Below, in pieces: positions 3,248-64,000 of a stretch of 64,000 nucleotides of DNA. Numbering within the stretch: position 1 is the stretch's first letter; each line of letters starts with the position of its first letter. The DNA is from Basidiobolus meristosporus CBS 931.73 (taxonomy: Eukaryota; Fungi; Basidiobolomycota), in the NCBI GenBank assembly GCA_002104905.1, contig MCFE01000096.1, forward strand, positions 109,075 to 173,074, given 5' to 3'. The notes under the pieces were generated by a model that saw only the letters and a program-made list of their open reading frames with translations, was not told where the DNA came from and searched no databases. A program made the position numbers and the translations under genes.

Positions 3248-3259
3248 GGTTTTGAGCCC

Positions 3260-5082: not shown

Positions 5083-5164
5083 TTATATGGAAGTAAGTCA
5101 AGTCAAAGGGGAATTAGTGTTACATATATGTGGATATGTGGTGCTACACTTTATTTATAGTGCT

Positions 5165-8116: not shown

Positions 8117-8199
8117 CCATCATAATACCATTAGAGACTCTTGATGAGGCTGTCAAACACCATCAAGTTTTTTGCCATTTAAGGCAATTTGATGTACTG

Positions 8200-10301: not shown

Positions 10302-10304
10302 CAA

Positions 10305-10760: not shown

Positions 10761-10780
10761 GTACTACTTTGTTGTTTCAG

Positions 10781-11126
10781 TTTTGTAAGAGTCATGGAGA
10801 TATTGACAGTGATTTGCATTTGATAAGTCATCAAGTGAAACTACTTAGTGTACTTGTTCTCCAAAAGTAGTATTTAGACTTTTACATGGTATTGGAGAAA
10901 CAGACAAGTAGAATGTGCTTAGGAAGATCCCAAGAGCATGAGTGGAAAGTTTAGGGCTGTTTGGACAACTTTGAGAAGCATCATGTTTGGGTGCCCAATA
11001 TTTGGGTGATGATATTCCAAGTAAATCCCAACAAGGAATTTGGTCAGAGTTCACTACTATTTGCAGGTAATGATCTAAGTAACTAAGTTGGGTGAATATT
11101 TAGGTGCAATCACAAGATTTCCAACA
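10781..11126 (-). repeat. Copia LTR (reverse orientation, degenerate)
   Basis: TTTTGTAAGAGTCATGGAGATATTG...GGTGAATATTTAGGTG...CCAACA is the reverse complement of the family LTR. No matching TSD. Confidence 0.8.
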
Positions 11127-37980: not shown

Positions 37981-38457
37981 ATCAACTGAAGTAAATCAAT
38001 TCACTGAAATAGAAACAAGTCTAGTTAGTCAAATACGAGATGCCCGATTGAAGAAACGTGTTTCCCATGTTTATCTTATCTTTACTGTTATAACGGATTC
38101 AGTTGAACACTTTCATGTAATATATTAATTTAATTATGAAATATCTGTAAATAGATCATTTTTCGTTGTAGCGCTCATGCCTATGATGCTTGAGCCGGAT
38201 TAGGTCTTAAAGTCCGAGCATGACTAGGATACTGCCGATTTTCCTAGCGAGGTGATCTTTCCTACCACTGCTTTGTTACCATTACCCGGATCCTTTGTTA
38301 CCATCGAGATGAGTACCAAATGATGTGACAGTTGGGTGCAATTGTGAAAGGATTCCGAATAATGGCGACAGCCATCCTGCCTCCACACCCATCTATTTAT
38401 AAGCACATGATCAGCATCCCCCAACGCTACAACACCAAACAGCTCCACTCCATCGAC

Positions 38458-39504: not shown

Positions 39505-39893
39505 TGAAGATCTCAAGCTGTAATCACCGTACCACCCCGCTAACATCATCACATTCAATAAAGTCCTTATTATTATCATATTCAATGCATATATAATATT
39601 TTGTGAGAACAAGACCTTGAACCATAAAATTCAATTTCCTTCCATGGATCGGTTTTAGCTGCATCACATACATCAATATAAACAACGATTTACTTGTATT
39701 AAATTCCAATAACTATCTTTTATACAGTGAAGGTGTGGCTATTTTTTCCGCAACATCCCATTTCATGACACCGTAAGAATAAGAATTAATGTGAGTTATA
39801 TTGTTACCGTGATAGTATATGATAGCAATAATGACTTTATTAAATGTGATGATGTTAGCGGGGTGGTACGGTGATTACAGCTTGAGATCTTCA

Positions 39894-40940
39894 CTATTGC
39901 TTTTCCTCCAGCTTGAGCTTCTCCAACAACGCTTCCACCTGGGGTGCTTTGACCTCGGCCTCGGTGGTGCTGCTGGGGTCAAAGTATGGCTTCTCACCTA
40001 GGACTGTGATGCGCTCTCCGTATCTTGGATAGGGGTAGTAGTCGAAGGTGGCATTGTGCTGGGTGCTGCGGTTGTCCCAGATGGCTACCGAGTTGGGTGT
40101 CCATGTCCAACGGACCTGGGCCTCGTGGGTGCGATGGAGATGGTTGGCCAGGAAGTCGAGCAAGAGATCAGACTCTGCTGGGGAGAGTCCTTTGATCGCC
40201 TTGGTGAACACCGCATTCACAAACAAGCCCTTCTGGTTGGTCAGTGGGTTTGTGCGGACCACTGGGTGCTCGGTGTGCGTAGGGATCTCTCGGGTCAATG
40301 GCTTTCCGGAGAGCTCGGCAAGCTTGATGAACACCTCTCCACTGTGGATCCCGGTGAGCCCCTCGAGGAACCCGCGGAACTCGGGACTCAGTTTGTCGTA
40401 GAGCGCGTAGGAGTTGGACCACAAGGTGTCCCCTCCAACCTCGGGGACTTGCTTCAGCTGGAGGATGGAGTAGGAGGCGGGCCGCTCCTCGAATGAGATG
40501 TCGGTGTGCCAGTATCCTCTGCGGTAGAGGGACTCCACCTGATGATTCACTTTTCCAGCTCCGGACGGAATCACAATCTCTGGGTAGGAGTTGGGGGCTG
40601 GGATGAATGGGTGGATGTGGAGCTCGCCCAATCTACGGCCAAAGGCGATCTCGTCGTCCTGGCTGAACTCCTGGTCACGGAAGAACACGACCCCTCGCTT
40701 GGCAGCAAGTGCGAGAAGGTCCTCGAGCTGGGCATCCGAGAGCTTGGCCAGCTGCAAGCCTTCGATTTCAGTCCCGATGGACGGGGTGAGATCCGTGTGC
40801 TTGGTCGCAGCATCCAACAGATTTCTGTACTCTGGGTGAGCATTGAAGCCCTGGATGTACTTTGGATTGCGGAACTCAGCGTGAGTCTTGGCGGAGTTGG
40901 CTTCGTTGGACGGAGCGACGGCTTGAGCAGAGATGGTCAT
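39894..40940 (-). CDS. TauD/TfdA-family dioxygenase, copy B
   Basis: 348 aa, identical to copy A except V9/A9. Confidence 0.93.
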   Translation of the reverse strand: MTISAQAVAPSNEANSAKTHAEFRNPKYIQGFNAHPEYRNLLDAATKHTDLTPSIGTEIEGLQLAKLSDAQLEDLLALAAKRGVVFFRDQEFSQDDEIAFGRRLGELHIHPFIPAPNSYPEIVIPSGAGKVNHQVESLYRRGYWHTDISFEERPASYSILQLKQVPEVGGDTLWSNSYALYDKLSPEFRGFLEGLTGIHSGEVFIKLAELSGKPLTREIPTHTEHPVVRTNPLTNQKGLFVNAVFTKAIKGLSPAESDLLLDFLANHLHRTHEAQVRWTWTPNSVAIWDNRSTQHNATFDYYPYPRYGERITVLGEKPYFDPSSTTEAEVKAPQVEALLEKLKLEEKQ

Positions 40941-44513: not shown

Positions 44514-46039
44514 CTAGATTTCTCGGATATTGGACCCGCCAATGTTTCCCTTATCTCTGGCAGTAAGTTCTTCAATACTCTGGCACTTGGTTTCATGAAC
44601 GAAGAAGAGAATACCAAAGAAGCCGGCCAAACAGCAGCCCATGAAGATGAGGAAGGTATACCCATGGATAGCACGTGAAACAGTGGGGAAGAAGAGGCCA
44701 ATAATGAAGTTGGATAGCCAGTTGAAGGCCAGAGCTGTGCCGGAAGTAACAGACACGGCATTGGTGGGCATCAGCTCGGTCATGATAAGGAAGATAATGG
44801 GCCCGAGACCGACGGCAAAGAATGCAACGAAGATCAAGATGGAGGTGACGGTCAATGCAGTGTTGTTGATTTCCAGCCCAATGCACATGAGAACACAGAA
44901 GATAGCTGAACCACCGCTTGAAACGAGTAGAAGGAACTTTCTTCCCACGCGATCAATCAAAAGAATTGAGATAATACTCATGAACACGTTGAGTCCACCA
45001 AGCCCGAGTGTGACATACTTGGCCTTTTCCCCGTAACTGTGCCTGAAGATGGATGTCGAGTAGTACATGATCCCATTGATACCTGACCATTGTTGGAGGG
45101 CTCCAAGACCGACGCAGACCAAAAAGTTCGTTCTGCAGTGCGGATCCCGAATGATTTCCATCAGGCCTAAGTTACGGCCGGATCCTTTAGCCTCCTCACG
45201 TGCCTTGACAATCTGCTGGAATTCAACCTCAACATCGCAGTTATTTCGCAGCTTGAGTAACACGGCCTTGGCCTCCTCCACACGTCCCTTGGAAACCAGG
45301 TAACGGGGGGTCTCTACGCACAGGGGGATCAGGAGCATCTGGACTATGCTGAATGCGCCAGGCAAACTAAGGAGCACTCTCCAGCCTATTGGGGTAGACA
45401 TCCCCAGACTCATGCTTTCCACAACAAGCATTCCGATGGTAGTCAAGCCTTGATTGAAGGCTCCATAGGTGCCGCGGGTCTTGATTGGCGAGATCTCTCC
45501 GATATAGGTTGGCGCTACGACCGTCCCAAAACCGCACCCAAATCCGATAAACCCACGACCGCAGATCCACATTCCCGGATTGATGGAGCAACTGATTAGG
45601 ATACCACCGAGTATCAGGAAGAAGTTGTTGACCATCATTGCTTGTCGACGTCCAAGCTTCTCCTGAGCGTAACTCCCGAGGAAACTACCAAAAAATGCGC
45701 CGAATGCATGATTCCCCACAGCAAAGCCCCATAACCAGGAGTTCATGTCAAAGCAGTAAGGGAATCTGCCGTCCAGCTTCTTATCAAAGTCAGCGCAATT
45801 GTGTATGGCGCTACCAGCTACGGTGGATGTTAGGAGATGGCTCACACAGAGGAGAGAGGGAAAGACTACTTACAGATATTGGCAGCAGCTACATTATAAC
45901 CAGCGGTGTATCGTACAATACATGCGGTGACTACACAAAAGGTGGTGTATAACGGAAAGGTAGTATTCCGCGAGTCGTTCATGAGCGACCTTTCATTGGG
46001 CTCCAGCTGAGCCAGCTTGTTACTCTTTTGGTCATCCAT
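44514..46039 (-). CDS. MFS sugar porter (GLUT-like), 2 exons
   Basis: GYN in TM1, KLGRR, YIGEISP...RG, ETPRYL, QQWSGIN...YYS, DRVGRK, FAVGLGP...ELMP, HETK. Intron 45818-45873. Confidence 0.93.
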
Positions 46040-46928
46040 TCTGCAGAGATCAAGGTGCAAGACAACCAACCTTGACCTTGGTATTTATTGGCATCGGGCC
46101 ATCTTATCATCACCAAACTGGGGAACTTCCTCACATGGGCCTTTAAACTGCTCTGGCTCAATGTTCAGCCATTTCCCAACAAGTGAAGGATCTGGTGACT
46201 GCTAGATTTTCTCTTTCTGGGTGGATTTTTAATACATTACTTGTTGGGGTTGTGCTAGACTCATGTGCGCCGTCCAGACACATTTGACCCAAGCAAATCA
46301 TCTAGACTGACCCAAGTACGATCGTCGTTTCTCTGCGCTGACCTAAGCACAGGTAATATGGCGATGAAATGGCTATTGCTCTTCCTCTTTATATGGCGGC
46401 TGGAGGCTACTCCATTGATTCTCGTCGATAATAAATATGCGAAATTATTTACCATTCTTGCCAATAATAAACATGCAAAACTCCTTCCATGAATCAATGA
46501 TCACTTTCAGTTAAATCATTTATAGAGATCCACTTCTTTGGAGGTCCATATACATGGCCAACCAGCACTTCCATGAGAATTTGAAAGATATTCCTGTATT
46601 TCTGCTCTGGAGATTGGAAATGATGAATATTGACTTATGCTAGATTATTTTATTGCGATTTTGTGATTACTTTCGATCATACAAGTCCCCACAATTTCTT
46701 GATTACCCTGGCTGCTCATACTTACTATCGCATCTGAAATGCAAATAAACCCAACTGTGACATTGCAAGCTATCAAAGCTGAGAGGGTTTATAGCAGTCA
46801 AAGGAACGATAAAAGAGGGCGGTAAGACCTGGACTTTTTCATTTACATGTTGATGGTATTTCACTGTGATGGTAATGTATGACTATTACCACCTTTGGAG
46901 GCACCAATAGCCCGCTGTTAGGTGTTGT

Positions 46929-47900
46929 TGTTGTAAAAATTCACCTAACTTAGTCACTTAGATCATTGACTACAAAGCATAAAGAATTCTGAGCAAACTC
47001 CTTGTTGGGATTTACTTGGAATAATCTTGCCAAAACATAAGGTACTCAGAGCATAAATTTAGTAACATTGTCCAAGCTACCCCAACCTTTGCACACATGC
47101 TCTTGAGACCTTTCTGAATGTATTCTACAGGTGTGGTTCTCCAAGATCATATAAAAATATAATATACAACTTTACATTTAACAAATCATCAAGTGGAAAC
47201 CACCTAATCCACTTGTTTTCAAATCACTTCCAGTATTTCCAAGACTCTTACAAGAGGTTGTGAGCCCCAAGCTGCCACTCTCTGCAATGTCTTCTATTAC
47301 TAATACTGGATTTTTTGCTCTGTTGAAAAGCTGATGGATATAACTACCAGGTATGGAAGGTGAAGATGAAGATGCTACTATTGGAAAGCAACCTTTGGGA
47401 TATTGTTATGGGAGCAAAATGTCCTCCTAATGATGCAGGAGGGGAAGTTGTAAAGTACCAGACAAAAGAGCAAAGTGCTTTTAACTGCATCTGCTACAAT
47501 GCTAAAGACAAGTTACTAATTCAATGCTCAAGAGCAAAAATGGCACAGAAAGCCCGGAAGGCACTGAAAGACACATACCAGTCATGTGTGGCTGTTACAA
47601 AAAAGCATTTTAGATGAAATATCTTTACTACAAAGATGATCCCAGGAGAATAATGAAAAATTTAATCAACAAAATTACCATGCTGGTCTATGCAATGGAA
47701 TCTCAGGGCATAGAAGCTACTGGTGGTGATGTGATATTTACCATCTTGAATAGCCTGAAAGACATATCTCAGGGCTTTGTATCAGCCCTAGAGTCCAGAA
47801 CTGAAAATTTGACCTCAAGTTACATATATGGAAGGGTCCTGGATGAGGAATTAAGAAAATCTAGTGAAAATCAGAAGGAAGGGGAAAATATTTCAATATG
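46929..47900 (+). mobile_element. Degenerate copia 5' LTR (46929-47255), PBS and gag fragment
   Basis: LTR followed by GGTTGTGAGCCCC. Gag pieces WKVKMKMLL...WDIV and FVSALESRTE. Confidence 0.85.
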
Positions 47901-48126
47901 TTATAATTATGAAGTTGTTAGCTAAGTATTTATGATACTTAGGCACATAGACTCTGTTCTGTGATTTGCACTTTACCCTGACCAAATTTCTTGTTGGGAT
48001 TTACTAGGAACATTTTCACCAAATTATCAGGTACCCAGATTTTGACCCTTCTTGGAGTTGTCAAAAAGACCTCAAGCTTTGCACACATCTTGGGACCTTT
48101 CTTAACAAACTCTACATGCTTGTTTG

Positions 48127-48475
48127 TGCTGTAAGAGTCTTGGAGATACTGCAAGTGATTGGGAGAACAAGTGTATTATGTGGTTTTCATTTAATGATTT
48201 ATTGAATATAAAAGTAGTATTTATACTTTCACCTGGTCTTGGTATAGCAAACACACAGGATAGATTAAGGAAGGTCCCAAAAACATGTGTGCAAAGTTTA
48301 GGGCTGTTTGGACAACTTTGAGAATTTTCATTTTCTGGGTACTTGGTATCTTGGTGAAAATATTCTAAGTAAATCCCAACAACAAATTTGGTCAGTTTTC
48401 TCTAGGCTTTGAAGGTGATGATCTAAGTGACTATGTTAGGTGAATATTTAGGTGGAAATACAAATTTTTACAATA
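48127..48475 (-). repeat. Solo copia LTR with perfect TSD GTTTG
   Basis: 349 bp reverse complement of the family LTR. GTTTG at 48122-48126 and 48476-48480. Confidence 0.9.
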
Positions 48476-49105
48476 GTTTGCTCTACTTTATCAGCAGCAT
48501 AAATACTCTTGATCAAAATATCTACAACTGAATAACAGGTAACTCCTCCAGCTCTCCACATCATTTCTAATACTCCTCAAGATATCAAAGCACAATAATC
48601 AATGATGATCACTATAGCAGGTACCCAAGACCTTTAAGAGTCAAGAGCAACCTTTTTCTGCAGCTACTGCAAAAGGAACGGACACACATCAGCCAGGTGC
48701 TTCAAAGGGAGAAATAATCAGCAGAAAAGCCTGATTACAGAAATACATCAATAACTGAAGATTGACTGATCATAGCTGCACTAATTATGACTACAAACAA
48801 GGATTCTCAGATGTGGCATACTGACTCTTGAGCATCTCAACACTCTATACACTAAAAAGAGCTCTTACCTATTATCAAAAATTTCCAATTAAGAAGGATT
48901 GATGGGTGACAATAGAACACTTATTACAGTTGGACAGGGCACTATCCAAATGGGCCTCAGAAGTAGTGGAGGAAGCACCACCAATCTCCAAAGAGATTCT
49001 CTATGTACTAGGAAAAGCCACCAACCTACTATCTGTTAGCAAGGCCACAGCAGAGGGAGTTAGTTTCAATTTTGAAAATCCTTGATGCTGGATCACTGAC
49101 CAAGA

Positions 49106-49453
49106 TGGTGTAAGGATTTGTAAACACCAAAACATTCCCCTGGCTTAGTCACTTGAATCTTTACATATAAATTGTAGAGAATGCTGACTAGAATTCCTGT
49201 TGGGTTTTACTTATGGTATTGTTGCCAAGACATCAGGCACCCAGAACATGAAATATTGAATAGTTGCCCAAACAGCCCCAAACTTTGTACACATGCTCTT
49301 GAGATTGTACTAAGTATATTCTATAGGTTCTCATTTCCAATATCATATAGAAATTTCTACTTTAACTTTGCATTTGATAAATCATTAAGTGAAAACAACA
49401 AGATCAACTTGTTCTCCCAATCACTTCCAATATCTTCAAGCACCTTTACAACA
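49106..49453 (+). repeat. Solo copia LTR with near-perfect TSD (CAAGA/CAAAA) inside an older copia pol fragment
   Basis: The flanks rejoin to the same pol sequence seen at 51890-51930 (GATCACTGA..CAAAAT..CCATAT). Confidence 0.75.
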
Positions 49454-49699
49454 CAAAATTGTGTCCATATCACTTTGGGTATCAGAGATCAGAATCCATA
49501 CAAGTTAACTTATATTCCACCTGATGGTTAAGCCTATAGAGTAAATCATATGAAGTAACATCAAAACTTTGGCACAGAGAACTTGATCATGCCAACGCTG
49601 ATTATTTAAGTAAGGTGATAAAAAATCAGCTAATTTCTATAACAATAGTTGATCCCCCAGCTAATTTGGATCACTGTGAAGCCTGCATATAGGGGAAAT

Positions 49700-52600
49700 T
49701 GTTGTAAAAATTTGTATTTCCACCTAAATATTCACCTAACTTAGTCACTTAGATCATCACCTTCAAATCCTAGAGAATACTGACCAAATTCCTTGTCGGG
49801 ATTTACTTAGAATATTTTCACCAAGATACCAGGTACCCAGAACATGAAAATTCTCAAAGTTGTCCAAACAGCCCCAAACTTTGCACACATGTTCTTGGGA
49901 CCTTCCTTAACCTATTCTACATGTTTGTAATGCCAAGACCAGGTAAAAGTATAAATACCACTTTTATATTCAATTAATCATTAAGTGAAAACCACATAAT
50001 CTACTTGTTCTCCCAATCACTTCCAATATCTCCAAGACTCTTACAACAGGTTATGAGCCCCAAGCTGTCACTCTCTGCAATGTCTACTACTGCTATTACT
50101 GGAATTTTTCCCTCCGCTGAAAAGTTGGATGGATCTAACTACCAAGTGTGGAAGGTGAAGATGAAGATGCTGCTACAAGAAAGAGGCCGTTGGGATATTG
50201 TCATGCAAGAAGAATGCCCTCCTAAAAACGTAGGAGAGGAAGCCTTAAAGTACCAGAAGAAAGAATAAAATGCCATTAACTGCATTTGCCTTAATGTCAA
50301 GGACAAATTGCTAATTCAATGCTCAAGAGCAAAAACAGCAAAGAATGCCTGGAAAGCATTAGAAGACACCTACCAGTCATGTTCAGCTGCCAAGAAGATG
50401 TATCTGAGACAAAAATTCTTTACTACAAAGATGCTGCCAGGAGAAGAAATGAAAAATCTAATTAACAGAATTACCCTGCTGGTAGATGAGATGGAATCTG
50501 TGGGCATACCAACTACTGATGAGGATGTGATAGTTACCATCCTGAATAGCCTGACAGACAAGTTTCAGGGCCTTGTATCAGCCCTAGAGTCCAGAACTGA
50601 AGATTTGACCTTAAATTACATATATGGAAGGCTCCTGGATGAAGAATTAAGAAAATCAAGTGCTAATAAGAAGGAAGAAGAAAATGCTTTAATAAGCAAT
50701 GATAAGCAACAAAGGAGGTACCCAAGACCCTACAAAGGCAACAGCAACCTGTTTTGTAACTACTGCAAAAGGAAAGGACTCACATCAGACCAGTGTCTCA
50801 AAAAGAAAGATAATCAGCAAAAGAAGCCTGTGTTGTATCCAAGAGAAAGTGTAATAAAACTCTTGAATGGTTTAACTGAACCAAAGGGACAATTAAGTGC
50901 AGAATCTTAGAATTGTCAGAGAGTGGCAGAAATATTAGCGGAAGGATTCTGATCTAATGTTGGTCTTGGATATAGCTGGGTTGGCTATAAAGACAATGAT
51001 ATTTGTTTGCTAGGCAGGCTAGGCTTGGTGTTCTTTGGAGTGCTATATATACTAGGCTTGGATAGAAACTAGAACAGAATTGTTGGATTCTTATTTTTGC
51101 TGCAACAGAATCTTAATTTTGTTGAGACACACACTAAACCAAAAGGTTCAGTGAACTTTATTTATACTTTTCTGATCAAGTTGAGTTAGTAAGTGCCAAG
51201 GGACTGGATTGATTGAAATCAATTTGGGTGTTCATAGGTGCATAAGATAAATGAAAATTACATCATCAATCAACTGATGTCTTGGCAACTGCACAGTGGT
51301 GGATAGATCTCAGATGACTAATCACCTGGGAAGGCTTAGCAGATAGGTTGATAACGTAATGACCATTTGAAAATAGATCAGGTGTGATAGCTAAAAATAG
51401 ATTTTGAGGTGGGATAAAATAAACTGTAACTGGGATTTGTTATGTTTGGGTTAGGGAAAATCAGTTAGGGTGCTAGATTTTCAAACAGAGTAAAATTGCT
51501 AAGTTTTATATGTTGATGCACAACGGCCTGAATATGGAAATGCAGCAACAACTGAAGATAGACTATTCATATCTGCACTAAATAAGACCACAAACAAGGA
51601 TTTTCAGACATGGTATATTGACTCTGGAGCTTCTCAACACTTTACGCACCAAAAAGAACTTTTTACCCATTATCAAGAAATTCCAATTACAAAGGTTTTC
51701 ATGGGTGACAATACAACACTTGATGCAATGGGAGAAGGAACTATCCAAGTAAACCTAAGAAGCAGTGAAGGAAGCCATATACTGACCTTTAAAGAAGTAC
51801 TCTATGTACCAGAAATAGCCAAGAACCTACTCTCTGTAAGCAAGGCCACAGCAGAAGGACTCAGTTTCAGTTTTGACAATTCTGGATGCAGGATCACTGA
51901 TCAAAATGGTGCCCATATTGCTTTGGGCATCAGAGATCAGAATCTATACAAGTTGACTTACATTCCATCATATTTGGAGGCCAATATACGTAACTTAAAT
52001 GAAGAAACACCAATGCTTTGGCACAGGAGATTTGGATACATCAATTTTGATTATTTGCGCAAAATGATCAAAGATCAGCTAATTTCTGGAGTGAAAGTTG
52101 ATCCCCCAGCTAATTTGGAGCACTGTGAAGCCTGCATATATGGGAAACAAGCCAGACAACTGTTCAAGAGCTCTGGGTTAATCAAAACTAAGAAAAAATT
52201 AGATCTAATTCACTCAGATCTGTGTGGACCTATGCAAAATTAATCCTTAGGTGGGATGAAGTATTTAAGCACTTTTATTGATGATTATACAAGATACACA
52301 TGGGTTTACTTCATGAAGAGAAAGGAAGAAGCTCTGTCTAAGCGCAGGGAGTTTAAAGCCATAGTGGAGAGAGAAACTGGAGAAAAAATCAAGAAAATAT
52401 GCTCTGACAATGGTGGAGAATATACCTCAAAACTCTTCATCCACTTCTGCAAAATTCATGGGATAAAGCAAGAGACTACTGTACCATACTCCCCACAGCA
52501 AAATGGAGTAGCAGAACAAGCTAATAGATCAATAATTGATTTGGCAAGATCTATGATCCATGATCAAAAATTATCCTATGATTTTTGGGAGGAATCAGTT

Positions 52601-55084
52601 GCCACTGCTGTATATCTTAAAAATAGGAGTTATAACAGAATACTTCGTGATTCTACTCCATTTGAAGCATGGTATGGATACAGACCAAGTGCAGAACATC
52701 TAATAATATTTGGGTGTACCACATATGCCAAAAAACTGGCTGGAAATCAGTCAAAATATGAGCCAAAAAGTGTAAAATGCATATTTTTGGGCTACTGCAA
52801 TGAGAGTAAGGCATACAGACTCTACAATACCAAAGCAAAGAAGCTTATCAAGTCCAGGGATGTGTTGTTTGATGAAAATTCAAAATTTTCACAAAAAATG
52901 ACATCAGATGATGACAAAAATTGATCTCAAGTCTACCAATTGTCAGGACTGAATCAGAGCAAAACAATGCAAATTTTTTCACTCCAGAGGACTCTACAAC
53001 TGTGGTTCAGCCAGAATCAGTGCCCAGGAATATCCCAGAAGTGATCATTCCAGTATCAAATGCCCGGAGATCCAATTGGACAAGAAATAGTCCAAATTAC
53101 TATATCAATGAGGGTACAAACTTAGCCTATGCCTATTCAGTCCATGTTGATGAACCACAGACTGTAAAAGAGGCCCTAAAAAGCCCTCAGACAAGGTTTT
53201 GGAGATCTGCAATGATTAAGGAATATCAGGCACTGATGGAAAATCAAACTTGGGACTTAGTCAAACTACCAATCAACCAAAAATCAATTGGATGCAGATG
53301 GGTCTTCAAGACAAAATACAAGGCTGATGGTACAATTGAAAGATACAAAGCAAGACTTGTAGCCAAAGGATACTCTCAAACAAAAGGACTTGACTATACT
53401 GAGACCTTTGCACCAGTAGCCAAGTTTAATTCCATCTGATTAATATTGGCTATTGCAGCCAAATATAAGTTTTTTATTCATCAAATGGATGTAAAAACTG
53501 CATTTTTGAATAGAGAACTTGATGAGGACATGTATATGGACCAGCCTGATAGGTTTGTTGATCAAGATAACCCCAATTTGGTCTGCAAGCTTAAAAAGTC
53601 ACTATATGGTCTCAAAAAATCACCAAGAGCCTGGAATTGCAAGATAGATTCTTATTTGGAATCTTTGAGTTTCAAAAGAAGTAATGCTGACTATAGTATA
53701 TAATATAAGCCCAATAGAGCAAATCCAGTTCTATTAGCTCTATATGTGGATGATCTTATTACAGCCACCAAAAACCTAGAAACATTGGAAGAGACTAAAT
53801 CCAGCCTATCTAAGGGAGTTCAAGATGTCCAATCTAGGAGAACTCAGTTACTACTTACGGATTAAGTTCTCCATAGAGAGAAGTACCCTGACTATCACCC
53901 TAAGCCAATCCAAGTATATTCAAGATATACTAAAGAAGTACAAAATGGAAGACTGTCAACTGGCAGCTACCCCAATGGAGACAAACCTTAACTTGGTCAA
54001 AACTCAACCAAATCAAGAGAGCTTGGTGCCATCTGAAAGCCCTGACTTTCCTTATCAATCTATGGTCGGCAGTCTGATGTATATCATGCTTGGAACATGT
54101 CCAGATATCTCATATTCAGTGGGAGTTGTCAGCCAACAAAATCAGAACTATGGATCTGATTGTATTGCAGCAGTTAAGCGGATTTTTAGATACCTAAAAG
54201 GAACTGCTGATATCTGCTTAAGATACACTTATAAGGATTCAGAACAGGATCTTGTGGGATACTCTGATGCTGATTGGGGACAAAATTTAGAAGACAGAAG
54301 ATCCACCACAGGATACACCTTTCTTTACTGTAAAGGAGCAATATCATGGAATTCAAGAAAGCAACCAACTGTAGCACTTTCCACCACAGAGGTAGAGTAT
54401 AGGGCAGCCTGTGAAGCTACAAAAGAAGCAATGTGGTTAAGAAAGCTGTTTACAGATTTAGGCCTATGTCAAAAAACACCTATTACTTTATTTCAAGATA
54501 ATCAAGGATGTATACAATTAGGTAGAAATCCAGCTTTTCATGCTAGAACCAAGCACATAGATATTAGACATCATTTCATACATGAAGCTATAGAGAATAA
54601 CTTAGTTAGCTTAGTTTACTGTCCTACAGATGAACTGATTGCAGACATATTTACCAAACCATTAGCTAGAGACAAGTTTGAATATCTTAGGTCAAAATTA
54701 GGACTAGTTAGTATGAACATTTAGCTGAGTGGGAGTGTTGTAAAAGTTTGTATTTCCACCTAAATATTCACCTAACTTAGTCACTTACATCATTACCTTC
54801 AAATCCTAGAGAATACTGACCAAATTCCTTGTCGGGATTTACTTAAAATATTTTCACCAAAATACCAGGTACCCAGAACATGAAAATTCTCAAAGTTGTC
54901 CAAACAGCCCCAAACTTTGCACACATGTTCTTGGGACCTTCCTTAACCTATTCTACATGTTTGTAATGCCAAGACCAGGTAAAAGTGTAAAAACTACTTT
55001 TACATTCAATTAATCATTAAGTGAAAACCACATAATCTACTTGTTCTCCCAATCACTTCCAATATCTCCAAGACTCTTACAACA
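49700..55084 (+). mobile_element. Full-length but inactivated Ty1/copia retrotransposon (LTR-PBS-gag-PR-IN-RT-RH-PPT-LTR)
   Basis: 349-bp LTRs at 49700-50048 and 54736-55084, about 10 differences by eye. PBS GGTTATGAGCCC, gag ATG at 50080, zinc knuckle with H to L change, WYIDSGASQH, LWHRRFG..CEAC, SDNGGEY..QNGVAE, RYKARLVAKG..HQMDVKTAFL..LYVDD, YSDADW..RTKHIDIRHHF. Stops at 50266, 52241, 53437 and 53701, plus frameshifts. Confidence 0.97.
50831..51525. mobile_element. 695-bp insertion, probably a solo LTR of another family, with 5-bp TSD GCCTG
   Basis: TGTTG...CAACG flanked by GCCTG on both sides. Removing it restores the frame KKPEYGNAA...WYIDSGAS. Confidence 0.85.
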
Positions 55085-56595
55085 ATCAGACCAAAGGCAG
55101 AAATGTCTCAAGGAAGGTCCCATGGGGCTGTGTATGCGGTTGGGAGCTTTTGAGCAAGTGTCAGGTATTGCTGCCTTGCAAGCTTTCAGCAAATCTTTAA
55201 AACAGCCAATACCTCATAAGCAAGATTTGAAATGAATATACCAGGACTAAACCAAGATCCAAGCAGAATCATACAGTATTCAGGTGTATACTTGGTGTAT
55301 AAAGCAAGAATATGGTTTCAGCATCTTTAGAACATATCACTGACTAAATGGAAAAGCCATATTGATGCAACTGCAATGCTGATTGGATCTAACCTAGGTG
55401 TCAGCTCTTGTAAAAAATAATAAGGGGCCTTGACACTGCCAGACACTTGCTTGCAAAATGAGAATTATGAATGCAATGATGCAAAATATGCAATCAGGGG
55501 ATAGGTATAGTGACAGTTCTGAATGTAAAGTACTGTTAAAAGTCCAACAATTATAGTTTATACAAGTATCATCTTAGGAAAAGACAAATGTGAATCTCAG
55601 CAATATAAATGAGAAAATTCCATTGAATTATCAGCAGTTAGCCAATATTGCATGACAAAATACTAGACTAATGCAATCAATACTCTTTTGTTGGTCAACA
55701 TTGTCTTGATATCAACAAATCTGCACCAGGAGTGGGCCAAGCCTGAAAAATATGGTTTATAGGTCTCTTACAGAGAGAGATTAACCAGACACTTAGATAT
55801 ATGCCAAAATGCAAAGCAGTGAATATCCACGCTGCCAGTGCTTGCTAAGTTTACCCACGTAGAGTATTTCAGTATACAGGTCCGGAATAACATATCAGAA
55901 ACTAAGAAATTGGCAGCTGCAGAGAATGAAGCTTTTTAGCTCCAGTCCGGTTTTCACACTGTAAATGCGATCAGAAATCAGCTGCTGGGCTTATACTGCA
56001 ATGCAGGCGCCAAATTGAGATTAATCAGTATTGATCAGAAATTGATTGCTGGGCTTACATGACCAGGCAGGCTTCCAATTAAAGTTTATACAACGTGGTC
56101 AATGAGATTGGCGCACGCACCAACGCCGGGTTGCGGAACAACTTCCCTTTTAGAGGATAGTAATATGATCTGGCAACATGGGCTAGTATGGCAAACAAAA
56201 TACCACGGAACATCATGATAAACTCACTTTTAACCGAGCCAATCACCACTCTGATATTCCTTATTTGAAAGTGGTGGCGGAAATTGGTTTAGGTTGAGGC
56301 TTGTATGGCATCACATGGTGGATGCAATGCCCTGGTGAGACCGTTTGTGGAAGACGATGCGTACTGCGCGGAGCCCGAAGCTATGCTATGATCTAAGGGT
56401 TATTCTAGAGTGGCGCCACTATTTGATATATCACAAAGCAGGTATATTCTATACTCAGCGACATTTAGAAGTATTATTGAATAAAGCATTCTTTGTGGCT
56501 CTCTTCACCGCCCGCTCCATCCCTATGCTCAGTAATTCATGAATGCATCAACACACGTATATGAAATAATGGGGATTTATTGAATGTATATGCTA

Positions 56596-57402
56596 TTATT
56601 TACGATTAACTTCGGGTATAAGGGCGTTCATTGCACAATTGGAGTACTGAAGCCATTGCCCTATTTGATGGTTACAAGCGTACGACCAACCATTGTTGCC
56701 ATCGATAGAGAGATAAATCGAGTCACCTTGGCCGACTATGCCGGAGCCATAGCATTTTGCATCTCCACGCTTGCTGGTTAGCCCTCCCCAGCTTGGATAG
56801 CAGAAATCTCCACCATTGATACGGTAACATTGTCGCCCAAACACTGCGGTCCGGAACTCCTCGTTCTCGGAGCCCAGATTATCCACCAGCTGGCTCAGGC
56901 CAGAGCGCAAACTATAAGAACCGAAGTTTTTTCCAGTCACGTTTGCCAGGAACCGCCACTCATCGTTAACCCTAATTTGGGCAGTAAATACTGCGTCTGG
57001 CCCAGAGGGCTGAACATCGAGCCGCATTCTGTAGCTCTCACCTGTCTTCCAATCCAGGTTCATAGTTACTTTGGATCCTGGCTGCTCTGTGGCGTTCTGA
57101 GATACAGCATCGCGGGAGATAGCGGATATTTCTGTCTTGCCACTTTGGCCCCGGTCGAAAAGAGTGAAAACAAGCGACCTATGTGAGGAACTGTCTGCGT
57201 ACAGGCTAAAGTACCCAGCGTCGAAATTTACGCCAGTCCACATTCCCGGTGACGCGTCTCCACCTTGAATTACTTCAATGTCGGATTCAAAGCTCGTTAC
57301 AGTACCGATATTCCAATCCGGAAAGTCATTAGCAAGCCTGAACTGAGCAGCTTGAACCAAGGAGAGTGCGGATAGCAAGGATAACGGAAGGAAGGCTTTC
57401 AT
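56596..57402 (-). CDS. Secreted DUF3472-like beta-sandwich protein, divergent paralog (268 aa)
   Basis: Signal peptide MKAFLPLSLLSALSLVQA, intronless. GYFSLY..LVFTLF, WKTGESY, FTAQI..WRFLA, QLVDNL..RTAVFGRQ align by eye with the neighbouring paralog. Confidence 0.75.
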   Translation of the reverse strand: MKAFLPLSLLSALSLVQAAQFRLANDFPDWNIGTVTSFESDIEVIQGGDASPGMWTGVNFDAGYFSLYADSSSHRSLVFTLFDRGQSGKTEISAISRDAVSQNATEQPGSKVTMNLDWKTGESYRMRLDVQPSGPDAVFTAQIRVNDEWRFLANVTGKNFGSYSLRSGLSQLVDNLGSENEEFRTAVFGRQCYRINGGDFCYPSWGGLTSKRGDAKCYGSGIVGQGDSIYLSIDGNNGWSYACNHQIGQWLQYSNCAMNALIPEVNRK

Positions 57403-57747
57403 ACTTAAGGATTTACTGTATACCGACATGAGCCAGAGTAGTCTTTATATACGGCAGAGATTCCCGGGTATTTACGGTCTGGATCAACATTTAACAGTTG
57501 CTTTTCAATCCGAAGTGCCTGGAAGAATTCGGGGATGCCAGATATGAACGGTTGACCAGCAGCCCTTGCACACACTTCTTTTCGATTCTCATGTGGCAAA
57601 TCCTCATTCGACGCGCACAGACCGTAAGCAAAAGCCTCACACGAAAATAGATAGTAACGTGGGTTATTCTGGCTCCCACCGGGGATAGATAGTAGACCTC
57701 TGTCTCGTATAAATACTACAAGCCGACCCATTCATCAGAAAAACATA

Positions 57748-58860
57748 ATGAAATTCAAGAGTCTCCTATTAGCCGTAACAGCCGGGCTTTTCCTTTCAGT
57801 CAAGAACACATCTGCCAGTGGACTGTGGATTTTTGGTAGCGGTAATGGCCAAAGCCTTGTTGGTGATGCCGGACCGTCCTATACCGGCTTTGTAACATCT
57901 GTGGAGGTTCCGGCTGGATACGACCCGGAAGGAACCTACTATTGTGCTGCAGGGTGGTACCTCGGGTACTTTGGCCTACAAAGCAACCCTGGTGATGTCC
58001 ACGATGCGATATTTACAGTATGGAATATGGAGGATAACGTACCTCCCGAAGTGCTGGAAACCTATCCAAATGCCCAGGTTGAGTGGTGCCAGAGCGATGA
58101 CTGCGCCGAGGGTCGGGCTGTCCAAATCAATGTTGTACCTGACCATGATTTCTGGAAGCCTGGAACCAAGTATTGGCTTATGGCAGAGATGGTGAAGGAA
58201 GGCAACGATGTAATATACACCGCCTCGATTTTCAAGGATGGCCAGTGGCATATATTCGGAAAAGTCCGGGGTCCGAACTACGCAAAGATGAGTGTGCCAG
58301 TTAACTATTATTATCAATTCCTTGAGGATTTCGTTGGGAATACAGATGCCCCCCGACGCGTAACATATGGAAACCAGTTTTACCGACTTGAAGGATCCGA
58401 AAAATGGGGGCCTATGGAATACTTCTCAGCTCAAGATGAAATGAGTGGAGTAAACACAACAGTGATTAACACGATGAAGCTAAGCCCAAGTGGCAATAGT
58501 TTTGACCTAGCACTTGACGGCCTCCTACCTGCCGGCAAGACTAACCCTACGCAAGTACCGCCTGTAGCATATGAGGAGCGCAATATCAAGAGTCTTCCAT
58601 CTTTTCTCGGGATTGATACAATTGAGCTTCCCACACGTCCACATCTCGAGCCTTGGAGGGAGCCCAGCTCAGCACGGTGCCCACGTCCAGTGCTGCCACC
58701 TAAGTATGATCCCTCAACATCGCATAAGGACAATCGCACACAAGATACCTTGCTTCACAAGGGTATTACTCTTTCTTACGACGGGGACCGTGTTGTCGCT
58801 GAAGGGCCTAATCCTTCTTGTCCCAGACCAACTTTACCACCAGTGTATAAGCATTTGTAA
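57748..58860 (+). CDS. Secreted DUF3472-family protein with Pro-rich tail (370 aa)
   Basis: Signal peptide, intronless. VEVP.G.D..GTYY...GYFGLQ...AIFTVW, WKPGTKY, YTASIF...W, YQFLEDF...RRVTYGNQF match my recollection of the DUF3472 pattern. Confidence 0.8.
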   Translation: MKFKSLLLAVTAGLFLSVKNTSASGLWIFGSGNGQSLVGDAGPSYTGFVTSVEVPAGYDPEGTYYCAAGWYLGYFGLQSNPGDVHDAIFTVWNMEDNVPPEVLETYPNAQVEWCQSDDCAEGRAVQINVVPDHDFWKPGTKYWLMAEMVKEGNDVIYTASIFKDGQWHIFGKVRGPNYAKMSVPVNYYYQFLEDFVGNTDAPRRVTYGNQFYRLEGSEKWGPMEYFSAQDEMSGVNTTVINTMKLSPSGNSFDLALDGLLPAGKTNPTQVPPVAYEERNIKSLPSFLGIDTIELPTRPHLEPWREPSSARCPRPVLPPKYDPSTSHKDNRTQDTLLHKGITLSYDGDRVVAEGPNPSCPRPTLPPVYKHL

Positions 58861-60056
58861 TAAACAAGCCCAGTATTAATTGTATCACTATTGCAAGTAC
58901 ACCCACAGCATTACCCACTGTAGCCATTTGAGGTGCAACTGGTCGTTGTGCCCATAGCGCTGATTACTGTATCCCGGGGTATGAGCCAGTAATAACTGGC
59001 ATATTAGCATGCATGGATAGAAGTACTCGACCTTTTGAATCCAAACAAGAGTAACACTCATTTTGGAGAGTAGATATACCTAATTTGTAGGATGTGCAAT
59101 ATTTGCTCAATCATGATTCCAAGCCTTCAATGGCTTTCCGGATTGGAGGGTTGCCCTAGTGACAGGTTTTGAGTCAGATATGTGTTTTTTGAACGTGAAA
59201 GGCTTTGGTGCATGCCACTGAATATTCGTACTTTCACAGGGACTCATGGCAATTAACTCAACCAATTATTCTACTGCCGTGTGTTTCTCTTGCGGCTATA
59301 CACGAACCCCGCTTAAATTGGTTAATCAGCATCACAACGCATGTGCATAATCAGCATCTCAATGCATGTGCATGAGCGTACAATGCTTCTGGGTAATCTG
59401 GAAGCTCTATAACCAGCCCTTTCCAAGAAAGGAGTAATTGTCTAGACCTTGGTTACGATTTAATACCTGATACATTTCGATCAGATTGAATCGTTACAAT
59501 CTAGATTTTGCCGATGCATCATGGTGGGCTAAGATATGCATATGTATGGAACATTCCGGGGTTAGTGCCCTAGTAGGACGAAGAGGTTTTCCAAGAATCA
59601 GTTGCTTATTCTATTTTGGCTTATCTAATGAAATACCAGGCTCATTCTCCCGCTTTGTCCTAGAAAGGGATCCGAGCTATACTCCTATTGGGTATGCCAA
59701 GTACGAAGGTTGATATTCTATATTGTAATATTTTGAAGTAAAAGGTTCTATTACTAGGGCGCTGGCTTCGAAGTACACGCAGTCAGAAAATGCAAGAATG
59801 AATCAGGCTGGCACTTGGTAAGTTAGAAGAGGCACAAATACAAAGCAGATCACTTATACGCGGCTTCAACAATTACAAATATAATATGGTAAAAACGCAA
59901 ACCATTACAAACGCAGAGTTTGTTGAAAGTTTTGAAATTACATCTAAATATTCACATAACTTAGTTGCTTAGATCTGAGTCTATACTTCTTAGATTCTGC
60001 ACAAATCTCTGGTTAGGATTAACTTGAATTACAATATCATCATATCTGGTACGCAC

Positions 60057-60840
60057 TGTTGTAAAAATTCGGAATTCCATCTAAATATTCACCTAACTTT
60101 ATCACTTAGATCATTACCTTCAAATCCTAGAGAATACTGACCAAAATCCTTGTTGGGATTTACTTAGAATATTTACCCAGAACATGAAAATCTCATAGTT
60201 GTCCAAACAGCCCCAAACTTTGCACACATATTCTTGGGACTTTCATAAACCTATTCTACGTGTTTGCTATACCAAGACTATGTAAAAGTATAAAAACTAC
60301 TTTGACATTCAATAAATCATTCAGTGAAAACCACATAAGCTACTTGTTCTTCCAATCACTTCCAGTATCTCCAAAACTCTTACAACAGAGTATGAGCCCC
60401 AAACTATTACTCTCTGCAATGTCTACTACTGCTATTACTGGAATATCTATCTCTGCTGAAAAGTTGGATGGATCTAACTACCAAGTGTAGAAGGTAAAGA
60501 TGAAGATGCAGTTACAAGAAAGAGGCCTTAGGGATGCTGTCATGGGAGAAGACTGCCCTCCTAAAAATATGGGAGTGGAATCCTTCAAGTACCAGAAGAA
60601 AGAACAAAGTGCCATTGACTGCATTTGCCATAATGTCAAATACAAATTGCTCATTCAATGCTCAAGAGTAAACAGCAAAGAATGCCTGGAAGACATTAGA
60701 AGACACCTGTCAGTCATGTTCAGCTGCCAAGAAAATGTATCTTGGACAAAAACTCTTTGCTACAAAGATGCTGCCAGGAGAAGAAATGAAAAATCTAATC
60801 AACAAAACTACCCTTCTGGTGGATGAGATGGAATCCATGG
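60057..60840 (+). mobile_element. Copia 5' LTR (60057-60387), degenerate PBS and truncated gag
   Basis: TGTTGTAAAA...TTACAACA, GAGTATGAGCCCC, MSTTAITG..EKLDGSNYQV. Cut at about 60840 by a LINE 3' end. Confidence 0.9.
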
Positions 60841-60844
60841 GTAG

Positions 60845-61760
60845 AGGGTTAGGGGGGGAGACAGTCACCAACAGGTGAAATCTTTATTTCAGTTGAAACA
60901 AAGAAGCCAGCGCTACTGTTGTAGCTTTGATACAAGAGTGTGTAGCTGAGGGGAATTTGTAGGTAAGTTAATAAGAAGTGATGATAGTTCTTCAGTGCTC
61001 AAGACACTGTTCAGTGGGAAGGGGGGTAGGAAGAGAGGTAAGAATGACTTGTGAACAACATTAATGAGGGGAATGTGATAAGGATTGATATTCATCATAA
61101 AGGGAGTGTGCTGCTGCAGATATTGCTGCCAAAGGTCTGTCAAGTACTTCAGGTAGGCCAGCTTGGGTTTTTCTGACTGCAGAATATAATGAGCAAACTT
61201 CTTGACTTCAGGATCTCCAAGTATAGTTCTCCAGCAGGAGCCAGGTGTAGTGTGGTGTGTTCTCTTCCAGGCCTTTATCAGTGGGTTGTTGCAGTGGTGA
61301 AGTCAGAGATATAATCTGGTTCTAAGGTAGAGAAGTCTGATCTTATAGGGCATAAACCCAAAAGCACCAAGAATAGCATGTCTGTAGGGGCATTCAGGCA
61401 AATGAGGCACCAAGGAGGTAATGCACCATACTGCAAACTTGCCAGGCTTAGTGCAGTCTCTAGAAGTAAGAGAGAGAAGTGGTAAGCCAAATTCCAGGAC
61501 AGGGAAGACAAACTGCTTGAGTAGAAGGAGGCAGCTGGGAGCTGAAGTTGTAGGAGGAGTAACAGCCAGTAGCTTGTGGAGTGCCTGTCTTGCCAGGATA
61601 ATTCTCTTCTTCAGGTGTGCTCCAGAGTCTAGTCCAGTAGGAAGGAAAGGAAAGCCAAGATATGTAGCAGAAACCTGAGCAGGTAGAGTGGAGTTCTCCA
61701 AGTTGATGGGAGAGCCCAAAGGTACTGTTGTTGCAATGGAAAGCTGGAGATTATTCTTCT
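60845..61760 (-). mobile_element. Degenerate non-LTR retrotransposon 3' portion (RT thumb region)
   Basis: ORF 61303-61719: ATYLGFPF...LLLLKQFVFPVLEFGL. The 3' end has AATAAA, a hairpin and CCCTAACCCT. Confidence 0.7.
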
Positions 61761-62563
61761 TAGGGTGTAGGTGTTATAGTAAGGGCTAGGAAAAGGTTAG
61801 AAGAGCAGGGGGTCTGGGGGACACAGTCCCCTAGAGAATAAAAAAGCAGGGGGTTTGGGGGATGCAATCCCCCATACTGCTCCCATACTCTTTAGATTCC
61901 CTTTGGATTACTTTTCTCTCATTCTTGGTTCTGGTCCCTTAGGGTTAGAATTCCTCCTCCTAACCCTTATCACCCTAACCATAAATATGTTTATCCTACA
62001 ATTGGCACATTGTCTGCTCATATAGTGGGCATGTCTGGGCCAGTATTTATCTCCCTATACTGTCCATATGCTCTGTATAATTCTTGATGACTATTTAATT
62101 AATAAATTGTTACTTTTAATGTATATCTAATAATTAATGGGAATCATCCCAATCTGGCCACAATCCCATATTTTGATAAGCTTTGGGCACCATAAATTCC
62201 GCGGCCCTAATATGATAAAAAAACTCATGGCTAATACAAATTTTCTGTAACCGGACTGCTTTTACCAAATATAAAGTGTATTCCAAAGTTTAATATATAT
62301 TATGGCTATAATAGAAACTTTATTTGACACCATTGCAGCCACTACTTGTGTTCTATGTGCACATGTATCCCGCAGGAATTGTAAAACTTAGCCACATGGT
62401 ACAAAAGTGCTTTTATTTTTCATCATGATAGTTTTATATGAGTTCCTAACGCACTTTGAAAGTATGCAGTAGCCATACCCCAACAGATTTTAAGGATGTC
62501 CACTAGTTACATCTACTTGTGTCTAACAAGAGCCATCAATTGTCAGCCACGCAATACTGAAAT

Positions 62564-62925
62564 TTAGGGTTAGGGGGAGGAAAGTCACCAAGTGGTGAAA
62601 TCTTTAGGGGGAGGAAAGTCACCAAGTGGTGAAATCTTTATTTACTTATGACAAGTATCTAAAGAAGCCAAGTTGATCTGAAGTTAATCCTAGAAAGCTA
62701 GGTCTGAGAGATATTTTCCTGGTAAGCCAGGTCTGAGAGTTGAGAAGCTGAGTGGTACTATATTTCCTAGTTAGCTAGGTCTGAGAGAGGTTTCCTGGAA
62801 AGCCAGGCCTGAGAAGTGAGAATCTGAATATAACTGAGCTAAGTTATACTGGTTTGCGGTAGCTGAATTGTGGCCGGAATGGCCAGTAGACTGGGGGAAC
62901 TGAGATGAATTTCTGGGTGATCACT
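62564..62925 (-). mobile_element. Short repeat-rich element sharing its 3' terminus with the LINE at 60845 (non-autonomous derivative?)
   Basis: Same AATAAAGATTTCACC..TTGGTGACT..CCCCCTAACCCT end. Internal C(T/C)AGG(T/C)CTGAGA subrepeats and a 34-bp tandem duplication at 62570-62637. Confidence 0.55.
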
Positions 62926-64000
62926 GGGTTAGGGTTAGGGTTAGGTTTCTAGACACTTTATTGGGAATTTCATATCAAGTGCTTGTCAATTAAGATAGTA
63001 TCCTTGTAACATGCAATAAAGAGGGAGTAATTGGAATCAATATGGGATGCACTTCAGACTTGGGAAGGGATAGCATTCACTAAAGTCTTATCTATAATAA
63101 TTCTGGCCTAATTGCTGATATCAAAGCTGAAAGCCTTAATTTCAAAGCTTTTTGGTTGTGAAATTGAAATAGTGCATCAGTATCCTCGAATCCAAAGCAT
63201 TTGTCAGCATGAGTGTAGTGAAAGTATTTCTGACACTTAGGACATTTGGATCCTAAACATAGTGTGCTCATTCTCCATCTGATAGCTTGAAATGCAAAGA
63301 ATGTTTCTTTCATATATAATGAGACATCTGCATGACTATGTGCATGGCGGCTACTTACTGCAATCAATCCTACTTTGTCATGGGGCCTAGTGGCCCTAGA
63401 GATGTTGTAAAGCTTTCTCTCAGCCATTGCAAGGTCAAATAATATTTGACAATTAGAAGAAAAACCAGCATTGCAAGCTAGGAACTTTTTGTAGCCTTCT
63501 GGCTTGTGTATATCTTGCAAAATTAATGAGTCTGAAGTGGTAGCTACTTTCTGAGACTTAATGATATTCACTAAGCCTTGTAATGGATTTTCAAGGGAGG
63601 ACTTAGCATAATGCATGCCAAATCTAATCCCAAGAGTCTCAAATCTGTCAGGTATGGACTCTATACCGCAAAGACTCTGAATGAGCCTACAGTACTGTCT
63701 TGAGTGATATATAGAGGCATTGACAACCCATCCAAGTGATTGTTGTTGAACTAGTGCAAGTTGTTGCCACTAAGAACTTTGAAGTGATAACTGCATCATT
63801 GGGGCTGCAAACTCCCACCTGGATCGGATGAAAGCCCTAAATAGGTGCAACCTAATGAGAGGAGGCCATCTGGCACCCTTGAGCTGGAGTAGCTTCAGTG
63901 TATTTGAAGCTTTAGTAACACACCTTTGTACATACATTGGCCAGTCAATGCCTTCTTGGGTAACTGGAAGACCCAGATAGTAATATGACTTAGGTTTTGG
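62926..64000 (-). mobile_element. Non-LTR retrotransposon 3' portion running out of the window, with a (TAACCC)3 tail
   Basis: YYYLGLPVTQEGIDW near 63990. C-terminal AIRWRM..KCPKCQKYFHYTHADKC in ORF 63092-63616. AATAAA at 62957-62962, then telomere-type repeats at 62926-62945. Confidence 0.75.

Follow-up and report, generated by a model that had tools for sequence, protein, structure and literature searches.

A conserved divergent pair of predicted secreted DUF3472 proteins in Basidiobolus, one with the full family active site and one with an altered site

Two intronless genes coding for predicted secreted proteins of the DUF3472 family, here called A and B, lie head-to-head in the genome of Basidiobolus meristosporus CBS 931.73 (GCA_002104905.1), within a stretch of 64,000 nucleotides (nt) that was analysed as a whole and is referred to below as the window. 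Their coding sequences (CDS), leaders and common spacer are the following (aa, amino acids).

56596..57402 (-), gene A, CDS of an A-type DUF3472 protein, intronless, 268 aa plus stop, with an altered active-site position
57349..57402 (-), predicted signal peptide of A, residues 1-18, ending LVQA/AQ, from inspection of the translation, with the leader conserved in orthologues
57403..57747 (no strand), shared divergent promoter region of 345 bp, with 1 difference from the second genomic copy vs 0.8-1.8% in the flanks
57748..58860 (+), gene B, CDS of a B-type DUF3472 protein with the full family core, intronless, 370 aa plus stop
57748..57816 (+), predicted signal peptide of B, residues 1-23, ending NTSA/SG, from inspection, with an N-terminal helix at residues 3-15 of the model

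A first-pass annotation, made from the sequence alone, had described two divergent open reading frames (ORFs) 345 bp apart, both without introns and both with signal peptides. Both ORFs are intact, A most likely beginning at an internal methionine. The A ORF reaches upstream to a first ATG (56596-57429, minus strand, 277 aa), and its real start is most likely M10 at 57402, giving 268 aa and a 345-bp spacer, because the alignment with the B. ranarum orthologue P0010 (271 aa, 55% identical) begins at residue 10 of the A ORF and the first ATG is only 22 bp from a TATA box. Each ORF is continuous and colinear with its orthologues to the stop codon, and gene length equals three times the number of residues plus 3 in every called family member. 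Inspection alone was used to judge the leaders, which look typical and cleavable (MKAFLPLSLLSALSLVQA/AQ in A, MKFKSLLLAVTAGLFLSVKNTSA/SG in B). The public Joint Genome Institute (JGI) model of A (K493DRAFT_348538) has 197 aa and is truncated with respect to the 268 aa given here; the full A-type ORFs remain conserved, as far as the stop codon, in paralogues and in both species. For another A-type gene (L004:5980-6819), the public JGI model has 252 aa and is devoid of the signal peptide. JGI models of A-type genes are thus truncated and should be corrected. An ORF of 108 aa in the spacer (57405-57731, minus strand) was rejected as a gene, as it has no family match and overlaps both promoters.

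Both proteins match Pfam family PF11958 (DUF3472, for which the Pfam name is now BPSS1860) above its gathering score of 24.8 bits, with 47.8 bits (E 2e-12) for A and 150.7 bits (E 8e-44) for B. Aligned to one another, A and B are 22% identical across 182 residues (E 8e-13). AlphaFold models of the two were built on a 130-sequence alignment, and their confidence is given below as the predicted local distance difference test score (pLDDT).

56686..57318 (-), DUF3472 domain of A, Pfam E 2e-12, mean pLDDT 88
57877..58542 (+), DUF3472 domain of B, Pfam E 8e-44, pLDDT mostly >85

The models display a concanavalin-like beta-sandwich, as in the solved members 4QHW and 8PMU. In Foldseek, the A model matches 4QHW with E 4.5e-17 and the bacterial protein HC7 (8PN5/8PMU) with E 1.3e-12 (template-modelling score over the query, TMq, 0.73-0.74), and the B model matches the same structures with E 3.5e-17 and E 5e-14, respectively. 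A single family and fold for the two proteins, as initially proposed, is thus established from the Pfam and the structure matches, and the motif series that had been read by eye (GYF, FTxW/F, WKxGxxY, Y/FTAxI, W, FLEDF/LVDNL, R) falls on columns that the family alignment shows to be conserved. Weaker Foldseek matches were to glutamic peptidases and glucanases of glycoside hydrolase family 16 (GH16). The likeness to glutamic peptidases G1 (eqolisins)/neprosin is a distant one of fold only (E 1e-4 to 1e-5, TMq 0.34-0.39, root-mean-square deviation 7-10 A), and neither A nor B has a Pfam match to them. No appended carbohydrate-binding module (CBM) is present in A or B, in which Pfam finds DUF3472 alone. 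No NCBIfam model matches either protein, and the only proteins recovered by word-indexed homology searches, whether the query was B or a 14-sequence profile, were those of the window itself.

The family can no longer be called uncharacterised, as it had been in the first-pass annotation, since HC7 is a mucinase (8PMU/8PN3/8PN5; PMC13003899) and BPSS1860 an attachment factor (PMC7998038). HC7, from Bacillus cereus K8, is described as a di-glutamate mucinase; with the help of a CBM5 module it cleaves mucins bearing Tn/T O-glycans (PMC13003899). The 8PMU chain is labelled a DUF3472 protein and was recovered by the family profile (E 6e-12), and the PDB titles give 8PN3 and 8PN5 as the Glu200Ala mutant of HC7 with bound glycopeptides. 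A profile alignment places Glu131 and Glu200 of HC7 in two Glu columns that are near-invariant in the family; this residue mapping was counted by hand and is based on the PDB titles and the alignment. The corresponding positions, all placed by alignment, are the following.

58108..58110 (+), B Glu121, column of HC7 Glu131, in the motif EG.G
58324..58326 (+), B Glu193 in YQFLEDF, column of HC7 Glu200
57085..57087 (-), A Glu106, column of HC7 Glu131 and B Glu121, retained
56881..56883 (-), A Asp174, column of HC7 Glu200 and B Glu193, Glu replaced by Asp

The two glutamates of the HC7-type site are therefore both present in B (E121, E193) and not in A (E106, D174). The Glu200 column contains Glu in 122 of the 130 family sequences; L004A and P0010 likewise have Asp there, and the residue is Ser in P0021, a more distant A-clade member whose site is even more degenerate. 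Among the 16 near-invariant residues of the 130-sequence alignment, B keeps 14 (changes S90T and G124A) and A keeps 9 (changes G76S, Q78Y, S90T, W92F, G122Q, F191L and E193D), of which W92F, G122Q/K, F191L/H/Y and E193D are common to all paired A-type proteins. Since both glutamates are retained in the other Basidiobolus subclades, including fusions with chitin-binding modules, the A lineage alone has remodelled the site and kept the remodelled version under purifying selection. The early suggestion of an enzyme plus modulator fits the retention of both HC7-type glutamates in B only; as to function, it stands as a prediction.

An important feature of the two genes is their constant association. 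All six loci examined have an A-type and a B-type gene arranged head-to-head: four in B. meristosporus (the window, L001, L004 and L011) and two in B. ranarum (L002 and L012). Their spacers measure 345-405 bp. Every A-subclade member that could be placed on DNA sits head-to-head with a B-subclade member, and no widowed member of either paired subclade was seen in the family census, which is incomplete. The A tree (winA,((L004A,L011A),(L002A,L012A))) and the B tree (winB,(L002B,L012B,(L004B,L011B))) have mirror topologies, with clades starred or supported at 93/89 in a 34-sequence tree. In each comparison, A and B have accumulated similar synonymous divergence (dS 0.63 vs 0.82, 0.30 vs 0.27, 1.06 vs 1.29 and 0.83 vs 0.97), and the ratio of nonsynonymous to synonymous change (omega) is 0.06-0.21 for both, indicating purifying selection. 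A was also considered as a decaying pseudogene, which was rejected as the gene is intact at every locus within this range of omega. Each species harbors two diverged copies of the orthologous pair (L004 vs L011, dS 0.63-0.82, in B. meristosporus; L002 vs L012, dS 0.27-0.30, in B. ranarum), as would be expected if segmental or whole-genome duplications had taken place independently in the two.

The control region between the genes is conserved as well, and contains one TATA box for each direction of transcription.

57444..57451 (-), TATA box TATATAAA facing A, ~45 bp upstream of the M10 ATG, in a block of columns conserved in five aligned spacers
57708..57715 (+), TATA box TATAAATA facing B, 40 bp upstream of the ATG, with TATAAA invariant in five aligned spacers

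One box per gene direction is kept in the spacers of all five distinct loci of the two species, and a head-to-head arrangement with less than 1 kb between the genes, conserved across paralogues and species, is found at six loci. Because the pair recurs at these loci with mirror trees, low omega and conserved TATA boxes, it can be regarded as an old co-duplicated module. The sequences indicate that joint duplication of both genes preceded the separation of the two species, recurred within each species and happened once more in recent times, with both genes intact throughout. That A and B are duplicated and diverged copies, as first proposed, holds true in the sense that the trees place them as old paralogues that split within the Basidiobolus lineage. 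A recent in-place duplication as the origin of the pair was rejected on the basis of their 22% identity and different subclades. The proposal that the two genes act as a unit gained strong support of an indirect kind, from the conserved pairing, mirror trees, similar dS, selection and TATA boxes; that the pair was copied and kept as a unit suggests, short of proof, that the genes work together.

The two proteins also differ in length, B carrying a C-terminal extension.

58543..58857 (+), Pro-rich C-terminal tail of B, low-confidence model, no Pfam match
58678..58707 (+), tail motif copy 1, CPRPVLPPKY, in the B tail
58819..58848 (+), tail motif copy 2, CPRPTLPPVY, in the B tail

In the B model, pLDDT is <55 from about residue 300, and the last ~70 residues are not confident. 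The B. ranarum orthologues of B share the motif C-[PS]-[RS]-P-x-[LQ]-P-P-x-Y, and no family match was obtained for the twin Cys-Pro motif. Long Thr-rich, mucin-like tails replace this motif in the B-clade relatives P0003 and its tandem neighbour, P0007 and P0014 (L003:390-4723; L006:6001-7233). Mature A and mature B each contain five cysteines, an odd number.

An exhaustive HMMER search of 1.84 billion representatives, with one representative per 50% cluster, gave 131 hits. The best were all from B. meristosporus or B. ranarum, followed by one Mucorales protein, from Chlamydoabsidia padenii. The Basidiobolus sequences (n=22) form one clade both in a 135-sequence tree (99 in the Shimodaira-Hasegawa-like approximate likelihood ratio test, SH-aLRT) and in the 34-sequence tree (100/100), sister (85/81) to a group holding C. 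padenii. Together with this sister group they belong to a 'short-form' clade (leader plus DUF3472 and no DUF5077; 95/96), separate from the sampled bacterial long forms. For the other short-form members inspected, long ORFs take up only 16-43% of the contig, which looks eukaryotic, and no bacterial sequence is nested inside the short-form clade in the trees. The remaining 104 hits are of the bacterial DUF5077 plus DUF3472 form, for example from Chitinophaga and Armatimonadota. PF11958 is mostly bacterial, as the first-pass annotation had described it. Of the horizontal acquisition advanced along with this, a recent event is not supported, because all Basidiobolus copies form one clade (100/100) beside a group that includes a Mucorales sequence, within a clade whose other members sit on eukaryote-like contigs. 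An ancient bacterial origin of the whole short-form clade is plausible, since all fungal copies are intronless, the family is mostly bacterial, and it has been proposed that DUF3472 passed from bacteria to centipedes (PMC7864903) and to chytrids (preprint 10.1101/2021.12.02.471044).

At least a dozen distinct DUF3472 copies are present in Basidiobolus, some of them fused to chitin-binding modules; for example, the paralogues P0023 and P0138 carry a hevein-type Chitin_bind_1 module in Pfam. Pfam scans of ten long relatives identified F5/8 type C galactose-binding (CBM32-type), NPCBM and BACON modules in bacterial proteins. In addition, a 76-kb contig of JGI metagenome 3300047123 contains a same-strand array of at least five DUF3472 genes (L009:1-16837) with low, eukaryote-like coding density, which looks like another lineage-specific expansion of the short-form clade.

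The genomic setting of the pair is a small island between repeats.

55970..60843 (no strand), CpG-normal island of 4.9 kb carrying the pair, 99.1% identity with L001
46000..55900 (no strand), left flank, CpG-depleted broken copies of Copia-type long terminal repeat (LTR) retroelements, with Pfam matches to gag, pre-integrase, rve and RVT_2, CpG observed/expected (o/e) 0.10-0.16
60844..64000 (no strand), right flank, CpG-depleted repeat block, CpG o/e 0.10

CpG o/e is 0.89 in A, 0.98 in the spacer and 0.72 in B, so that the isolation of the pair in a retroelement nest, with its CpGs kept, was correctly recognized (0.72-0.98 vs 0.10-0.16 in the flanks). TpG/CpA is in excess in both flanking blocks. 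In the right block, the ORFs at 61303-61719 and 63092-63616 (minus strand) have no Pfam match; to the right of the pair, a retroelement is hinted at solely by a gag-like match at 60500-60826, still inside the island and just left of the block, which is weak and falls short of the gathering score (E 0.007). Across the window, transposon blocks (1-11000, 46000-55900 and 60844-64000) have CpG o/e of 0.03-0.16 with TpG/CpA excess, and genes 0.7-0.9, a signature of methylation-driven CpG decay confined to repeats. Several other loci of the family in the genome adjoin CpG-depleted blocks, which is given here as an observation and not as an enrichment.

Protein B is letter-for-letter identical on two contigs of the assembly, that of the window (173 kb) and one of 18.6 kb (L001). 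Within the island the two copies differ by one synonymous change per CDS, whereas the flanks differ by 0.8-1.8% (1.6% in the comparison with the CDS, Fisher p 3e-8), and outside the 4.9-kb island the transposon content of the two contigs differs. The order and content of the flanking Copia-type elements are also different (window 46025-55901 vs L001:1-8230 and L001:12310-13884). Either transposon turnover is recent relative to the duplication of the locus, or the two copies represent haplotypes. The other genes of the window are ordinary fungal ones, coding according to Pfam for alpha-adaptin, NAT10, Sec63, two TauD proteins and a sugar transporter. The intron-rich nature that had been attributed to these neighbours was spot-checked for alpha-adaptin, whose ORF begins at position 230 of the Pfam profile, so that this gene is split. 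The two TauD-family dioxygenase genes are arranged tail-to-tail (38332-40940, Pfam matches).

Among the closest known systems is HC7, for which PMC13003899 cites Narimatsu et al. 2024 (Nat Catal). To our knowledge, di-glutamate mucinases were described in 2024 from bacteria only, and fungal members are unstudied. HC7 resembles A and B in Pfam family and fold and in having DUF3472 directly after the leader, without DUF5077. It shares both Glu columns with B (E131/E200 and E121/E193, respectively), unlike A with its Asp at the Glu200 column. However, HC7 is a protein of 659 aa with a CBM5 that tunes specificity, its identity to A and B is only 14-18%, it is not known to have a divergent paralogue partner, and its mucinase activity was assayed, whereas A and B are known here from their sequences and models. 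BACCAC_02064 of Bacteroides caccae (4QHW/4QHX) is the best match both in sequence (E 1e-5 with B alone, 1.7e-34 with the profile) and in fold (E about 4e-17), with the common motifs GYFG.Q, EG.G and FLENF. Unlike A and B, it is of the bacterial two-domain form (DUF5077 plus DUF3472), and it was deposited as a 'putative two-domain sugar hydrolase', a name that does not come from an assay.

The Pfam namesake BPSS1860 is a surface protein of Burkholderia pseudomallei needed for attachment to host cells, which mutants lose by 90% (PMC7998038). It is similar to A and B in its signal peptide and its extracellular or surface location, with a role at the host cell surface; it differs in being bacterial and described as an attachment factor, and the likeness, unaligned, is at the family level only. 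The DUF3472 proteins of centipede venom and chytrids are, like A and B, eukaryotic, secreted and expanded by duplication (PMC7864903; 10.1101/2021.12.02.471044). Many centipede forms possess DUF5077 and introns and have been proposed as recent transfers, whereas the Basidiobolus clade is separate, intronless and of the short form. A further parallel may be drawn with an unrelated family. The chi-lectins of glycoside hydrolase family 18 (GH18) are lectins derived from enzymes, in which the catalytic glutamate is replaced, the fold and binding cleft are kept, and the change is under purifying selection. The parallel with A is one of concept, since the fold and family are others and the loss of activity of A is only predicted.

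What the sequences and models establish is membership of the family, the fold, the state of the site residues, the conservation and joint duplication of the pair, its purifying selection and its promoter elements; the substrate, the catalytic state of A, co-expression and any physical partnership are inferred. In the reading that we favour, to which we give roughly an even chance, the product of B is an HC7-type hydrolase that is secreted and acts on glycoproteins, and A is its co-produced paralogue, with weakened or shifted catalysis and binding related substrates. The two secreted intronless DUF3472/BPSS1860 proteins would be transcribed in opposite directions from the short spacer, each from its own TATA box. 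B is predicted to be an active hydrolase of glycosylated substrates, because the whole family core, including both HC7-matching glutamates, is kept; these would most likely be O-glycosylated mucin-like proteins, encountered by the fungus inside animal guts, on prey or on cell walls. A is predicted to be a weakened binder of glycans or glycopeptides, or an enzyme of shifted specificity, acting alongside B, because the fold and the first Glu are kept, Asp occupies the Glu200 position, and these changes are fixed in orthologues under purifying selection. Everything in the module contexts and the role of BPSS1860 points to recognition of glycans or glycoproteins at a cell or mucus surface.

Several observations weigh against this reading. 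With only 14-18% identity to HC7, the substrate could be a quite different one (a fungal or insect glycoprotein, or a polysaccharide), and the deposition of 4QHW calls it a 'putative sugar hydrolase'. The role of HC7 Glu131 as second catalytic glutamate would follow from its invariance in the family, and with Asp in place of Glu, A may keep some activity. Segmental duplication carries neighbours along anyway, so that conservation of the pair is no proof of cooperation; more distant members of the family occur singly (L005-L008) or as a same-strand tandem (L003); and the family census, drawn from one representative per 50% cluster, is incomplete.

The main alternative, possible although doubtful in our view, is that A and B are independent secreted enzymes of different specificities, with a head-to-head layout that is an accident of duplication and products that are uncoupled. 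Many DUF3472 paralogues of Basidiobolus are indeed solo or in same-strand tandem, the genome is full of duplicated contigs (the window vs L001 at 99.1%, and L004 vs L011), and Asp can serve as catalytic acid/base, so A may be active. Such an accident is harder to reconcile with two genes that are both intact, with omega well below 1, at six loci through at least three further duplications and one speciation, with no widowed member of the paired subclades seen, and with the spacer and its two TATA boxes conserved; moreover, the A-type substitutions cluster at near-invariant family positions. In a sharper version of cooperation, which we consider unlikely, a bacterial-type di-glutamate mucinase would have given rise to a two-part secreted system in Basidiobolus, with B an active glycoprotease and A a Glu-to-Asp substrate trap on the same glycopeptide patches, guiding, restraining or protecting against B; the two would be co-made from the divergent promoter and perhaps form a complex. 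The cysteine count of each mature protein is odd. Quite improbable, in turn, is that neither is an enzyme and both are secreted or wall-associated lectins or adhesins like BPSS1860. The 90% loss of attachment in BPSS1860 mutants and the location of that protein on the cell surface (PMC7998038) would agree with this, as would the concanavalin-like beta-sandwich, which is common among lectins, and the Pro-rich tail, which could tether B to the wall. However, B keeps both glutamates and 14 of 16 near-invariant residues, the assayed member HC7 is a hydrolase (PMC13003899), and BPSS1860 attachment may itself reflect glycoprotein binding by an enzyme-like site.

A recent bacterial acquisition followed by in-place duplication to a pair is highly improbable, even though PF11958 is mainly bacterial, the fungal copies are all intronless, and DUF3472 transfers have been proposed for centipedes (PMC7864903) and chytrids (10.1101/2021.12.02.471044). 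At 22% identity, A and B fall in different old subclades and have closer relatives at other loci and in B. ranarum; all copies belong to the one Basidiobolus clade, sister (85/81) to the group of Chlamydoabsidia padenii, the other short-form members are on eukaryote-like contigs, and no bacterial sequence is nested inside the clade.

Basidiobolus lives in the guts of amphibians and reptiles and occasionally causes disease in humans. For such a vertebrate-gut fungus, an expanded family of predicted secreted proteins is a candidate means of handling host mucus or heavily glycosylated proteins. Full-site and altered-site copies kept as a pair would offer a natural experiment in the conversion of enzyme paralogues into binders or regulators. 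If B is indeed a glycoprotease restrained or guided by A as a trap, the pair would be the first di-glutamate mucinase system from a eukaryote, and the first in which a pseudoenzyme serves as dedicated partner.

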